A DNA stretch of 64,000 nucleotides from Trichosphaerium sp. ATCC 40318 (lineage: Eukaryota; Protista; Tubulinea). Shown in pieces: positions 17,436 through 46,023 of this stretch. The notes below the pieces were generated by a model, which was not told the DNA's origin, did not search any database, and saw nothing but the letters and a program-made list of their open reading frames with translations. The stretch is from positions 1 through 64,000 of the forward strand of contig JALMLS010000311.1 of NCBI GenBank assembly GCA_038496445.1, given 5' to 3'. The number at the start of each line of letters is the position of its first letter. The stretch's first letter is position 1. A program made the translations under genes and the position numbers.

Positions 17436-18352
17436 ATGTTACTACGAACTACTGCATACGCTAAACAACGGGTTGTCCGCATACAAAAAAGAGCGCAATA
17501 CTCAACATCTAGTGCTACCAGACGCAATGTTCTTGTACAAGGTGGCGGAAAAGGCATTGGCCTTGCATTTAGTAAGTAAGTTCGTTAAATTTAGATGAAG
17601 ATGACCTACAACGTTACTGACCGCGTAAATTAGGCACTATTTGCAAGAAAATAACGAAAACAAAGTGATTATTACATGTCGCGATCCAACTACAAATAAC
17701 GACCTTTCAGATCTTCGTAACAAGTACGGGGAGCGCGTTGCGCTGCACCCACTTGATATCAAGAGCGAAACGTCAATTAAGAACCTGAGCGAAGAAGTCA
17801 AAAAAACCGTTGACAACCTCGACGTCCTACTTAACGTAACTGGCATTGTACACCCTAGCGGAAGAGGTACACAATCAACACTTATACACCTTCACCAACA
17901 CCCATCTAGGCGAGACATCACTTCAACAAGTGACAGAAAAGGATAGTGCAGAAGTATATGCTATTAATTGTCTTGGTCCTTTACTTGTTACTCGATACTT
18001 TGAGCCTCTTTTAACTGCTACAAAGGATGTTTCACATATCATTAATATCTCAGCAAAGAGCGGTAGTATTGCGCTTAATATAGGCGGATGGTATGCTCAG
18101 CGTATGGCAAAGGCAGGGATGAACATGTGGACCAAGAGTGTTGCTGTAGAGCTAAAAAGGAAGAATGTTATTTGTGTTGCTTTAGATCCTGGTTTAGTAA
18201 AGACACAGCTCTCTGAGCCTTATCATAGATCTTGGAAGGGTGTCGTATCTCCAGAAGTAACTGTTGAGAATATGATAAAGGTAATAGAAGGCCTTGATAT
18301 AAGCAAGACTGGAAAGTTCATGGATTCATTTGGTAAAGATATACCGTATTAG
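17436..18352 (+). CDS. Short-chain dehydrogenase/reductase, C-factor/CsgA-like, with mitochondrial-type presequence
   Basis: MLLRTTAYAKQRVVRIQKRAQYST presequence; VQGGGKGIGLA, LDVLLNVTGI, INISAKSGSI, DPGLVKTQLS; two introns. Confidence 0.88.
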
Positions 18353-18559: not shown

Positions 18560-20072
18560 TTATACACGGGCTTGCTCTTTCATTTTAAACATTATTTGTA
18601 ATGCTTGAATGATGAACCTATAAAAGTAGCAAACTTGATTAGAATGGGACAAGGAACACAGGTACTATAAATATACTAAAGCGTTACCTTGGCTTTGAAG
18701 CTGAACCTTTCCATGTAAATTTTTCCCATTCCCAATTGTAGTTTGGTTCGAGCTCTACCAACATTTGTGGCCAGAATCTTGAAAGCCTCCAGCATTGTAC
18801 AGTGTTTGAAAAAGCAGTCAATTGTCTGAATGAAACATGATACCTTAAAGAAAAAAAGTAAGTTCAACAAAAGCAAAAAAATTATTTGGTGATGGTAAAA
18901 AAAAGTTCATACCACATTTCTGGGCTTGTGAAACCAGCCTTCTTCCTTACAGCTCTAAGAAAAGTACGGAATAGTGTCCATTGGTCGAATTCAGCACGAG
19001 TGGATGTAAGTCCTTGCCAATGAAATCTTGTATTATCCCAAACATGGTTTTTGTAAACTGACTGTAATGCACGTTGTAGTGATCCTCCATACCTAAAAAC
19101 AAACCTTAAGAACCAACATACAATATCAATCCTTTGGAGCCTTTTTGTTTTTGTGGTTGAGCAAGTATTAGTACATTTCTATTATATAATCGCCACCAAC
19201 TTCCTTAAAGAAACTTTGTCTAATCCCATACCAATCATCCATTACTTTAACCCCAAGCTGTTCAGCACATGTATTGAATAATTGCCGTTGACGTGGTAAT
19301 GTCCAATAATTCTTTGGTGCATGTCTTTTGTACAAACACGTGTTAATCACGTGACTATTTTTTTTTTGTTTAAATAACAACGCACTGGAAGTTTGTTGGT
19401 GTCCATTTGAAGTCAGGGAATAAAGCCTCCAATGTCTTAGATAAAGAGTTTTTGTGACAACGCCTGATATGGTTGTAATTATGAGAATTATTGGGTGTCT
19501 TTTACAAAAGACTGAAGTGACGCACAATATACAACGACCTCCATAGGCAGTAATATCATTAACGCCAAAGTCGTACCAATCATCTAAGCTCTTGACACGA
19601 AGTTCTTTGGCTATTGTGTTCATTTTTATATGTTGAACATTTGGGTCTTCCCAGTGATGTACTGGTGCGTTTTTGCGCCTAGAAAAGGTATGGTTAATAC
19701 TTGCAATAAGGTACATAACATGAACTGTGCAGGCGCACATAAACTTCCATGACTCCCAGGAGTATTGAGGGTAAACATCAGCTAAACATTTGTAAAGTGA
19801 ACCGTCATAGAATTGTCTGCTCAAAACGCCTCATTTAGCGTTTATTTTGTTGTTATCATGTTTACTTGCCGTATAATGTACGATGTGTCACTTCCAAATG
19901 ATGTTGGATCAACTGTGTACCATTCTTCTAGATTTTTGAAGCCATTTGTCTTCTCAACAGCGTAGATGAGGTTTTTACGGTTACTTGGTATCGTCCAGTG
20001 GCTCCATGGGTTTCTTGTAGAAGTTTGGTGAAGTTTTTGTCCGTTATTACTCAAATACTTCAGTGTACTCAT
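18560..20072 (-). CDS. Trp-rich approximately 70-aa repeat protein (about 4 repeats, no catalytic domain seen); paralogue 1
   Basis: Repeats such as APKNYWTLPRQRQLFNTCAEQLGVKVMDDWYGIRQSFFKEVGGDYIIEMYGGSLQRALQSVYKNHVWDNTRF; multi-exon. Confidence 0.8.
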
Positions 20073-40445: not shown

Positions 40446-41977
40446 CTAGTTTACATTTGCCAATTTCACTTGTTCAGGGTTCATTGTACGTCGATTTGTG
40501 TTTTCAAATGAGCATGTAGCGTTTACATCAGTAAACAGAAGAGCATCATCTAACTGAGTACTCACTTGCACGTGAGGAGCTTGGTTAGATATATATTTGA
40601 TAAGAGACTGTGTAGTACCATCCCACCAGTACGGGATGATAACAAGCGTTATACCTGTAAAAAAAACCTCAGCTTTAAACAAAAGAAAAGTGAAAAAACT
40701 GATCGACAATCTCGACATTTTTCTCACCTGCAACGTGACATTGGACTCTTTTTTCGACATCATAAGCTTCTCTAGTTACACTTGATAAACCCTCTCCAAA
40801 TACCTTATCATCATAATGTTGCTCACCTAAATGTATAAGAAAAGCAATTAAACAAATGCAACTGGTAAGGCATACCTTGATATTCAAAAGCAAGTGTTAA
40901 ATCAGGTACAAATACATCAACGGTCAAACTTCTTCCTGACGCTGCTCGCGTCCCTACAGCATGCTCATCTATGACATGACACTCAGGGAACACTCTAGAA
41001 ATACATGATGACATCCACCTACAAAACAAAGAGGTAGCGTAAGACTACAGGAAGCCCAAGTCTGCTTACCTTTGTCGTGATTTTTTGGACAAGGTAATAA
41101 ACTTATGCCACTCCCAACGGTACTGCGGATCCAACACTGATAAAACTTGAGGATAATATCTTAACAATCCTCCACCACCTATCTGACACACCTGCGCTTT
41201 TGATACTGTATACCTAAATGGAGAATATTAACAACAAGTTCTCGTCAAAATTCAAACCATACCAAGAGCTTAGTGTCTTTATACCGAGTGTGTCCATAGC
41301 TTTGTGAAGGAAATCTTTGACATTCTTTGAGTCCTGCCAGTATCTATAAGGGTTTCTATCACCCTTTTCCTTAAACGACCAAGCATGACATGGGAAATTA
41401 GCGCACAAGGCACTTTGTAAAGATCCGTTGAATCTTTATGTAAAATGAGAAAGCTTTCGCTATTTCCATAACTATGTACCTGCTGATAAGCCCATGGCCA
41501 CGTTGCTTTATGACGCTGGCAACTGAAATGTTATACCATCCATCAAGCTCTTTTACGTTTAGTGTTTCGCTTATCGTGTCGAGAAGCTTTCCTTGGTTAT
41601 GTTTGTACCCCCAGTAGCGTTGGGGCACTTTTCTACATGAAATGTTAGTAACGCACGCCAAATAACACTATTCGTACCTAAATCGCTCTGGTTGCCAGTT
41701 GTGCCACGGATAAATGCACTCAAGAGCTTTATAAACAGAATTGTCGTATCTATCGCGCGTTAACGCTACAAATAACATGAACGCGTATTTTATAGCGTAT
41801 TAAACCAGTTTTGTGGTTAACACACCTCAGCATGACACCTCTACCATTATTTTGGTTTATATCCCTGTGCGTAACACTATACCACCCATTTAAATCTTTA
41901 ACGCCAAGCTTTGCGCCAATAACCTCAAACCTTTGGCGCTGATGGGCAACATTGCACCAATAGCCACGCCAAATCAT
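40446..41977 (-). CDS. Trp-rich repeat protein (3 repeats) with C-terminal RAP/Vsr-like PD-(D/E)XK domain; paralogue 2
   Basis: Repeats such as KVPQRYWGYKHNQGKLLDTISETLNVKELDGWYNISVASVIKQRGHGLISR; C-terminal VDVFVPDLTLAFEYQGEQHY...DVEKRVQC...GITLVIIPYWWD. Start codon uncertain. Confidence 0.82.
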
Positions 41978-43039: not shown

Positions 43040-43317
43040 TTTTGTGCAACTTTGTGGATCAATCAAATGTAAATTTAACTGTATTGTATTTTAAAACTGT
43101 AATTATAAAAACTAGTCAGCTGGTAAATATTCTTATTTGGGATGCAATGCGCAGTTTTAATTGCGTGAAAACAAGCTGGGTTTTATCTCTTAATGTTGGT
43201 CTAACACGACATCTTTATCACGTTTTTAGCCGGCAAATAAATGTTGCCGCAACTTTGAATGCAATACTATATTTCTTGGCATCTCACGTGTGGTCCATAA
43301 AAATACAAGTATCTTAT

Positions 43318-45908
43318 TTAGTCCCAACGCCTTGCTTTATTCATGTGATTCATTAAACCAGACAATTGAGATGCACATTCTCCTTCTGATGTAATTGCAG
43401 CATCCAAAGAACGTGTTAAACGAGTGAACGTATCATAAGCCTGGTACAAAGGTATTTTTGCAGTATCTGTTTGTGATAACGCTTCTAACTGCTTTTCAAC
43501 AGCTTTAACCTTTTTAAGGAGTGTATGAGAGCTTGCTCTTGTAACAGCGAATATCGAATAGTTGTAAAGAGAGTACTCAGGGTACGATAGGTTGATTGCT
43601 GCTTGGCACCAAGCTTGAGAGTACATTTGGTATTCTATGCCTTCTTCTGCAAATGACTCACGTAAGTCCCTAAATATAAAAGTTAGATACCTTTTCTTAG
43701 CTATGGTGTAAGGTTGTGCGAGATTGTACCTGTCTGATGTAATGACCATCGTTGCTGAAAGGTTTTCTGGTGATAGTGTATGTACCCAAGCTTTCATTGC
43801 ATCGTCAGCACACTCAAAACCTGAGGCACTCAGCATTTCTATCGTAGTGCCATTCTCAGTACTTTGTTTAAGGAAAATAAGTCAGCATCTTTGGAAATTG
43901 AAGTGAAAGCGTGAAAGTAGTGGCGTACACTTCAGAGGTAGAGTCAAAGAATCTATCTCCGTACACAACAACACGTTTAACTTGTTTAAGATTTTCAAGC
44001 CATTTCTTTGTCAAGTCGATTACGCACTGGCGCATAATTTGTCGTTGAAGTGAATTTCCTTCATCAGCTAATGATTTATGAGTTAGTTTTAGTTGAGCCA
44101 ATATTTTGTGATGACTTACAATCTTTTTTAGATAGCCACTCTGATACGTATGGCAATGTATGAAAAATGTTATCACAATCGATTAATAGCGTGTTAACAC
44201 AATCTGGAATACTATCTACACTAAAAAAGAATAAGTTTTAAATAAAAGATTGTACAATCTTTTTTACACCAATCAACACGTACTGAAATTGGCTCGCTCT
44301 CCATTTTTGCTCCGGATACAATGTGAGCATAGCTTCTGATAATGAACCATAACTATTTGAGGGCGTTAATGTACGAAACTGAAAAGACAAAGCTCTATTT
44401 CTGTGAAACAAATAGACAGAAAAAAATAAGAAATGGTTGCAAAAGAAAAGATGTGTACATGTCTAATAGTGGTGCACCACCTAATCTTCTTATCTCCTCA
44501 GATGTTACACGATACCAAGCTTCAGCAGTGTGTAAATGTAAATGTTTTTTTACACGTGTAAGAAAATATCTTTGGTGTTTTGTCTTTTGCCACCACTCAG
44601 CGGTAGGTGCATCTCTAACAGAAGAACATAAATAACAAGACATCAACAATTTAAATCACGCTTACATAAACTCCCATAGTAGCCAATGATACTCTGGGAA
44701 AGCATTGACAAGTCGTTCATGCATACTTCGTATGTCTTTCTCCTCTTGCTGCCTAAAGAATATTGGTTAACACTTCAGTAGTTGGGTATTTTACACTGCA
44801 CGTCACGTACTCTACAGCCAAATCAAAATGTTTAGTTAGAACTGTATACCAATCACTCATTGCCATTACTTCCAAAACTTCTGCTGTATCTTGAATACGC
44901 TGTAAAACCGAGAGGTGTAAGCGAACAAAGCTCAAATCAAGTTGGGTTTTTGTGTTTTTATAAATAACAAAATGACTTGTTCTTGTCTTTTCATTCTTTT
45001 GTACCGTGTCAGTTTGTGGGCGTTGCTTGTTCTTCTTTTTTATACGCTTTGACACTGTTCCAAAAATTTCTTTACGTCTTTCCTCATTTACATCTCTAGA
45101 TACATTCCTATATAATTGTCGTTCAATGGCAGCGCTTGTTTTCTCACTAATTCTTCTATCAGGACGCTATTTAAAAAATGTTAATCATATATATCCTTAT
45201 TGCAACAGTAACACTTTGTTACCAATGTACCTCTCCTACGTCTATCCTTTCACTTCCAAATCTACTTTCGAAGCTACGCTCTTTATATGGCTCAGTATTT
45301 TCTTCTACTTTCTCCTCTACTATATCACTAGCTACTTCCTCTTTGTGATGATGTGGGTCATAAGATCTGGACCTATTCGGACGGCGATCTTCCCGTCTAC
45401 CTCTCCTATCACCTCTTCTGTCGTCATTCCTCTCATTGTACCCTGCACGTTTGTCTCTACCATCTCTTCGTCTCTCAGAACGTTTCTTGGATGGCCTGCC
45501 ATCATTGTCATACGCTGAGCTACCTCTACGTTTAGGCGCAGGTACATCAGCTTCAAGTTCAGAGAAATTAGCTCGTGGTACACCGCTATGGGCACTTTCA
45601 GCTCTTTCTTTTCGTTCCATATGCTTTTTTTTCTTTTCCATACTGTATAGGGAGTTAATAGGCCAATTGATTTCATGTCAAATGTTTGATTTTCTCGTTT
45701 CTCACCTGGACGAATTCTCAGTGGATACGAGGTCTACTAGGTCCAGAGCATAGCATCGTACGCCTAAAAAAGGAGAACAATTATTAAAAGTACATAATAT
45801 CCATCATTTACGCGTGATATGGCCACCAAGACACGCACCTTTGCGCCTAGACACCTTTCTAGTAGATTGTACACGAGATTGCACAATACAGCGTGCTGAT
45901 TGCCACAT
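43318..45908 (-). CDS. Trp-rich repeat protein with mitochondrial-type presequence and C-terminal YacP/Rae1-type NYN (PIN-fold) nuclease domain; paralogue 3
   Basis: MWQSARCIVQSRVQSTRKVSRRKGVRCY presequence; R/D/G-rich region; two repeats (WYTV..AFPEYHWLLWEF and WWQK..WYRVTSEEIRRLGG..YGSLSEAMLTLYPEQKW); after splicing LLIDCDNI...VVVYGD...ADDAM...VITSDRDL. Confidence 0.78.
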
Positions 45909-46023
45909 AGTACGCAATGAAGTGATTTGTACTACTTTTCTCAACAATAGCCAGAACTGAACTCCTGATGGAACTTGTACGACCAAAAGCCCAAAAAAAA
46001 AAAAATTGTTATTTTGCTCACAA

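Follow-up and report, generated by a model that had tools for sequence, protein, structure and literature searches.

The DNA analysed in this work is a 64,000-nucleotide stretch from Trichosphaerium sp. ATCC 40318 (Tubulinea; assembly GCA_038496445.1, contig JALMLS010000311.1, positions 1 to 64,000 of the forward strand), which is referred to here as the window. It is AT-rich eukaryotic DNA with short introns, and the G+C content around the gene described below is 36%–40%. A bacterial-style list of open reading frames (ORFs) fragments the region 43318–45908 into many minus-strand pieces, which an earlier inspection of the letters (the sequence-only reading) had taken to be one hidden multi-exon gene for a mitochondrial, repeat-guided ribonuclease analogous to PRORP. 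The pieces do belong to one gene on the minus strand. A manual splice model free of in-frame stops joins 11 exons (45908–45839, 45763–45706, 45642–45231, 45166–44811, 44752–44666, 44614–44459, 44352–44284, 44220–44120, 44067–43929, 43861–43730 and 43669–43318) through ten GT-AG introns, and the open frame runs from the ATG at 45908 to the stop at 43318–43320, which gives 643 codons plus the stop and a protein of 643 residues. The introns are 51–106 nucleotides long; their donors read GTAAGT, GTACGT or GTACAN, with branch sites of TTAAC/CTAAC-like sequence 10–25 nucleotides upstream of the AG.

Transcript evidence was drawn from public sequencing runs. Parts of the stretch were found in seven runs, and four runs from four studies were compared with the window over 43200–46000; the run sequences are short Logan contigs, several of them spliced, and the spliced ones come from three studies. 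Six of the ten introns are supported by spliced contigs, five being skipped exactly and intron 6 being placed by means of a loose contig end. Exact skipping was seen for intron 1 (45838–45764) in contigs of X1 and X6, for intron 2 (45705–45643, 63 nucleotides) in a contig of X1, for intron 4 (44810–44753) in a contig of X3, and for introns 7 (44283–44221) and 8 (44119–44068) in contigs of both X1 and X3. The last two introns are those named in the sequence-only reading, and since intron 7 is skipped in both samples, an ending of the transcripts at the TAA inside it, which that reading had allowed for, is contradicted. The X1 contig over exons 9, 8 and 7 extends past 44352 with 14 nucleotides which, when reverse-complemented, match the last 14 of exon 6 exactly, and the acceptor of intron 6 (44458–44353, 106 nucleotides) therefore lies at 44353. 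The acceptor at 44401 used in our first model is ruled out by this loose end; the corrected intron drops 16 residues relative to that model and restores the repeat motif G-G-A-P-L-L-D-I-Y-G-S-L. Introns 3, 5, 9 and 10 are taken from the splice model and are spanned by no contig. Intron 10 (43670–43729) is 60 nucleotides long, in frame and without a stop, so that the frame is kept whether it is spliced or retained. The X1 and X6 contigs which confirm introns 1 and 2 extend up to 50 nucleotides upstream of the ATG. The gene is real, spliced and expressed.

Metagenome scans for a spliced transcript contig, made with the exon 7/8 junction and with a word from exon 10, returned no match. At 45599–45765 one contig of X3 has intron 2 unspliced, and about 8% of the intron positions differ from the window compared with 1%–2% in exons; a diverged strain or allele is therefore represented in X3 by its pre-mRNA or DNA.

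The first 28 residues of the protein (45750–45908, covering exon 1, intron 1 and the beginning of exon 2) contain eight K/R (charge +8) and no D/E, have a hydrophobic moment of 0.46–0.53, which corresponds to moderate amphipathicity, and end V-R-C-Y↓A-L. This fits the R-3 motif of MPP/Icp55 processing, R-x-[FYL]↓[AS]. The acid-free N-terminus ending RCY is thus as it had been described, and in its composition and hydrophobic moment it looks like a mitochondrial presequence, which suggests a mitochondrial location of the protein. Residues 44–242 (44981–45641) form a region of high charge, with 59 K/R and 41 D/E in 207 residues, and are probably disordered, judging by composition. Pfam searches of exons 3 and 4 gave no family above threshold, the sole entry being PRP1_N on exon 4 at 15 bits, below the cut-off.

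Self-comparison of the protein revealed only two repeat units of about 75 residues, both rich in Trp and one of them degenerate. The degenerate unit, repeat A (residues 243–326; 44671–44980, with intron 4 inside), was identified by self-comparison and by tblastn to the window repeats, and it keeps D-W-Y-x-V and F-P-E-x-x-W-x-x-W-x-F and is without the G-G..L-L segment. Repeat B (residues 327–401; 44289–44670, with introns 5 and 6 inside), identified by tblastn, is canonical and reads W-W..Q-R-x-F-L..W-Y-x-V..G-G-x-x-L-L-x-x-Y-G-S-L..Y-P-E-x-x-W; it has every element of the pattern W..Q-R-x-F..W-Y-x-[VI]..G-G..L-L..Y-x-G-S-L..Y-P-x-x-x-W-x-x-W-x-F, of which repeat A has part. In tblastn searches of the window repeat B matched 19525–19800 and 41241–41423 with E of about 1e-4, and two further genes of the window, at 19171–19800 and 41241–41962, contain the same Trp-rich repeat. 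The repeats on which the sequence-only reading had relied are present, but with only two units, one of them degenerate, the term "repeat-guided" is overstated or unsupported.

Both of these other genes lie on the minus strand. The neighbouring multi-exon gene at 40446–41977 has at least three copies of the repeat (41241–41423, 41476–41616 and 41843–41962, by tblastn), and an intron-rich gene at about 19171–20072 has several, for example D-D-W-Y-x-x..G-G and Y-P-Q-Y-S-W-E-S-W-K-F at 19525–19800.

Repeat B is followed, after a linker of about 10 residues, by a candidate nuclease domain (residues 412–545, exons 8–11, 43615–44195), which was recognised as a divergent YacP-like NYN domain with a YacP hidden Markov model (HMM) and hhalign applied to the spliced domain. 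The segments TLLIDCDNIF, KRVVVYGD, ECADDAMKAW and MVITSDRDLRE, in which the acidic motifs of NYN/PIN ribonucleases had been seen before, are all present in the spliced product, and all four YacP motifs occur in order and with YacP-like spacing. Alignment to the YacP columns gave as putative metal ligands D417 (44180–44178), D502 (43806–43804) and D526 (43734–43732), each in an invariant YacP Asp column, together with D474 (43957–43955), which adjoins the V-F-D column. Residues kept in invariant columns are D417, N420, R445, A501-D502, T524-S525-D526 and G537, while an invariant Glu is replaced by K506. Asp7 and Asp81 of Rae1, the two residues mutated in the catalytic-dead enzyme, stand opposite D417 and D502 by our own count on a Bacillus-type seed. 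A tail of about 100 residues (546–643; 43321–43614) with K-K-V-K and K-A-R-R clusters completes the protein and is probably helical.

The YacP HMM was built from 197 domains. A degenerate L-L-V-D-G-Y-N-V pattern gave 120 bacterial loci, three ORFs of which scored 60–204 bits on PF05991, and 120 cyanobacterial members, each carrying the PF05991 annotation, came in through a homologue search; the seed set is biased to the exact L-L-V-D-G-Y-N-V pattern. With this HMM the spliced domain scored 15.4 bits over HMM positions 1–116, and 17.3 bits when the C-terminal tail was included, compared with 14.4 bits for the form retaining intron 10. None of 5000 composition-preserving shuffles reached the score of the domain (best 11.2 bits) and the reversed sequence scored 3.8 bits. 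Among 2109 ORF translations of the fetched loci, only the pattern-matched YacP loci outscored the domain (at least 25 bits), the best other translation reaching 12.3 bits. An hhalign comparison with the 197-sequence profile gave P = 4.6e-4 over 118 columns, with a score of 28.7, where the highest of 200 shuffles had 23.9. These values support a YacP/Rae1-type likeness of the tail half that is weak, specific and beyond chance, and we consider it likely from the alignments that the domain is a true, very diverged member of the YacP branch of the NYN group, or a sister to it.

A previous hhalign run in which the exon 10+11 read-through was aligned with a 16-sequence YacP alignment gave P = 0.3 and was set aside; in it the intron-encoded S-D-R-Y-N-L was mispaired with V-D-G-Y-N because intron 10 was read through, a pitfall for any search made with the uninterrupted 172-residue ORF.

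Comparison of the contigs with the window revealed 13 single-base differences, five in the 63-nucleotide intron 2 and eight in exons, six of the eight being synonymous. Exons 8–11 hold six synonymous differences and one that is non-synonymous (R468C). About one quarter of random changes are expected to be synonymous, and the excess therefore suggests that the C-terminal half of the protein is under purifying selection.

Taken together, we favor a reading, to which we give a probability of about 50%, in which a nuclear gene encodes a modular 643-residue protein that would act as a metal-dependent RNA endonuclease in an organelle. An N-terminal targeting peptide, probably mitochondrial, would be followed by a long charged and disordered segment, by two Trp-rich repeats of about 75 residues that are presumably helical and, some 10 residues further on, by a PIN-like domain that belongs, though very divergent, to the NYN/YacP (Rae1) type and has a helical tail behind it. 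Asp417, Asp502, Asp526 and probably Asp474 would hold Mg2+ or Mn2+, and the repeats, the tail or both would bring the enzyme to its substrate. Behind this we rank a Rae1-like, ribosome-linked mode of action as the main mechanistic rival, then a domain that is non-catalytic or resembles a nuclease by chance, and last a PRORP-like RNase P.

Several observations weigh against the favored reading. The domain is not a clean member of PF05991: its 15.4–17.3 bits, obtained with our own HMMs as a proxy, fall short of the 24.6 bits that Pfam sets as the cut-off for that family, the 16-sequence YacP profile gave only 9.0 bits (a score reached by one of 5000 shuffles) with an hhalign P of 0.035, and exons 8–9 alone contribute 0.4 bits to the YacP HMM score. 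The GYN signature is lost, with C-D-N following D417 so that only the Asn (N420) is retained, and the column of the invariant V-F-D aspartate is occupied by G473, the Asp (D474) coming one residue later. A domain of this kind had been proposed, and the four collinear motifs, the HMM scores and the hhalign result with the large profile support the resemblance, but on these grounds the word "intact" that was applied to it was too strong. Pfam searches of single exons and of the exon 10+11 read-through found no relevant family and no PPR match. With phmmer, the read-through of exons 10–11 (180 residues) found no relative among 1.84 billion representative proteins and the exon 10+11 piece nothing relevant among PDB sequences, and a Protein Atlas search gave no usable match. 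NLS-like (nuclear localisation signal) basic clusters are found within the charged region. The remaining points concern single inserted bases. In the tract at 45617–45624 (minus strand, codons 45–48) X1 has nine A residues where the window, like X3, has eight; this would stop the ORF from the ATG at 45908 after about 57 codons and leave a start at Met50 without the presequence, so that the resemblance to a presequence stands but its coupling to the protein, and with it a mitochondrial location, is weakened. X3 has one additional nucleotide in exon 4, at 44941, and a protein made from this version would be truncated. The sequence of the window is open through all eleven exons.

Each of the two insertions duplicates an adjoining A, and both are in spliced, RNA-derived contigs. 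They may be strain alleles, contig errors, assembly errors or the result of slippage.

The sole match in the phmmer search of the 1.84 billion representatives was P0001, a low-complexity repeat protein of 2599 residues that matched the coiled tail, and it was judged spurious. A lookup of the encoding contig for the 172-residue ORF found it not to be on record, and an AlphaFold2 model of exons 10+11 with the in-frame intron was all-helical with a pLDDT (predicted local distance difference test) of 38 and unusable. Pfam searches of ten large ORFs recognised nothing but a fragment of a short-chain dehydrogenase, an exon elsewhere in the window (17846–18349, plus strand; adh_short, 51 bits), and when 5.8 billion proteins were searched with it through a word index, none matched at E <= 1e-10. 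Public protein sets seem to cover the organism poorly.

The same points can be read to mean that the tail half is not an active nuclease, either because an unrelated alpha/beta or helical domain resembles the motifs by chance or because a degenerate PIN-like module has kept a role in binding RNA or protein. Scores that are low and depend on the alignment (9–17 bits), the lost GYN, the displaced second invariant Asp, the lack of detectable homologues of the exon 10+11 piece among the 1.84 billion representatives, the Atlas and PDB sequences, and the frameshifted versions in X1 and X3 would all agree with this. However, the score obtained with the large profile is equalled by none of the shuffles and none of the unrelated ORFs, the four motifs are ordered and spaced as in YacP, three of four Asp stand in invariant columns with the Asn, the Arg and T-S-D, and exons 8–11 have a strong synonymous bias. 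We consider an inactive tail doubtful, while still a minority reading of some weight.

YacP/Rae1-type nucleases have been described from Gram-positive bacteria, from cyanobacteria and from the chloroplasts of plants (PMC5499597, PMC10351889). In bacteria and plants they consist of a single domain of about 170–190 residues, with at least four conserved Asp that form the active site, two basic C-terminal helices and a conserved GYN that directly follows the first Asp in strand 1 (PMC5499597). The sole member that has been studied, Rae1 of Bacillus subtilis, cuts mRNA in a way that depends on translation, upstream of ribosomes that have stalled or collided (PMC12407103, PMC10351889, PMC13622287), and its structures are in the PDB (5MQ8, 5MQ9). 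In the candidate domain the motifs L-L-[VI]-D-x-x-N, V-V-[FY]-x-D, x-A-D and V-x-T-S-D follow one another in the order and at the distances seen in Rae1/YacP (PF05991); the conserved Arg of helix 1 is shared as well, and the domain is followed by an extension that is probably helical. It differs in scoring 15–17 bits, below the family threshold, in having CDN for GYN and the V-F-D Asp shifted by one residue, and in its place at the end of a 643-residue protein that begins with a presequence and continues with a charged region and two repeats.

It could be argued from this that the protein works as Rae1 does, the domain and helical tail docking on (mito)ribosomes and cutting mRNA at stalled or collided ribosomes with the repeats as a second contact, which would make its task translation quality control and not precursor processing. 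The only characterised member of the closest family acts in this manner (PMC12407103, PMC10351889, PMC13622287), sequence comparison gives YacP as the best match over the whole set of four motifs, and a helical tail follows the domain as it does in YacP (PMC5499597). Yet the tail aligns with the YacP C-terminal helices at just 1.3 bits, and the two repeats and the charged region of 200 residues have no counterpart in Rae1. We regard such a ribosome-linked mode as unlikely.

The sequence-only reading had gone further and proposed a protein-only, repeat-guided mitochondrial RNase P, or other precursor-RNA processing enzyme, convergent on PRORP (PF16953). The overall logic of an organellar presequence, helical repeats and a PIN-like/NYN metallonuclease does parallel the layout of PRORP (PMC9181182), and a second NYN type, MNU1/2, is implicated in 5' maturation of plant mitochondrial RNA (PMC9181182). 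PRORP itself combines PPR motifs with a zinc-binding linker and with a nuclease domain of distinct structure (PMC5499597, PMC9181182). The present protein has no PPR match on any exon in Pfam searches, two Trp-rich repeats of about 75 residues where PRORP has five PPR motifs, a linker of about 10 residues and no recognisable zinc module; its domain resembles YacP, in comparisons made with YacP profiles. Nothing links it to tRNA or to tRNA 5' processing, and we hold the proposal to be very improbable. Reviews describe PRORP as missing from amoebozoa and fungi (PMC10941002), which is not used as an argument here. A PRORP substitute was the claim that made the finding exciting and it is without direct support; a role as PRORP or RNase P is unsupported speculation.

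Two other groups of organellar proteins are similar in design to the favored organellar RNA endonuclease. MNU1 and MNU2 (NYN PF01936 plus LOTUS) are mitochondrial and combine an NYN-type domain with separate RNA-binding modules, and their catalysis is likewise unproven (PMC9181182), but they belong to another NYN subfamily, use other binding modules and are restricted to seed plants. The OPR/HPR-RAP and FASTK proteins fuse a lineage-expanded helical repeat to a nuclease-type tail; there the HPR/OPR unit has 37–38 residues, whereas the repeat described here has about 75 and is rich in Trp, and the tail here is NYN-like and not RAP/PD-(D/E)xK.

The most far-reaching version of these ideas, a new and independently evolved organellar RNA-processing endonuclease in which a lineage-specific Trp-rich repeat adaptor delivers a YacP-derived nuclease to mitochondrial precursor RNAs, and which could be a PRORP-independent protein-only RNase P, is in our estimate a long shot. 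If the favored reading is true, this nuclease class would gain a new architecture, in which a highly diverged YacP copy is joined to a helical repeat specific to the lineage and to a mitochondrial-type presequence, and the protein would be a further case, beside PPR-PRORP, OPR/HPR-RAP and FASTK, of the "repeat adaptor plus interchangeable nuclease" design in organelle gene expression.

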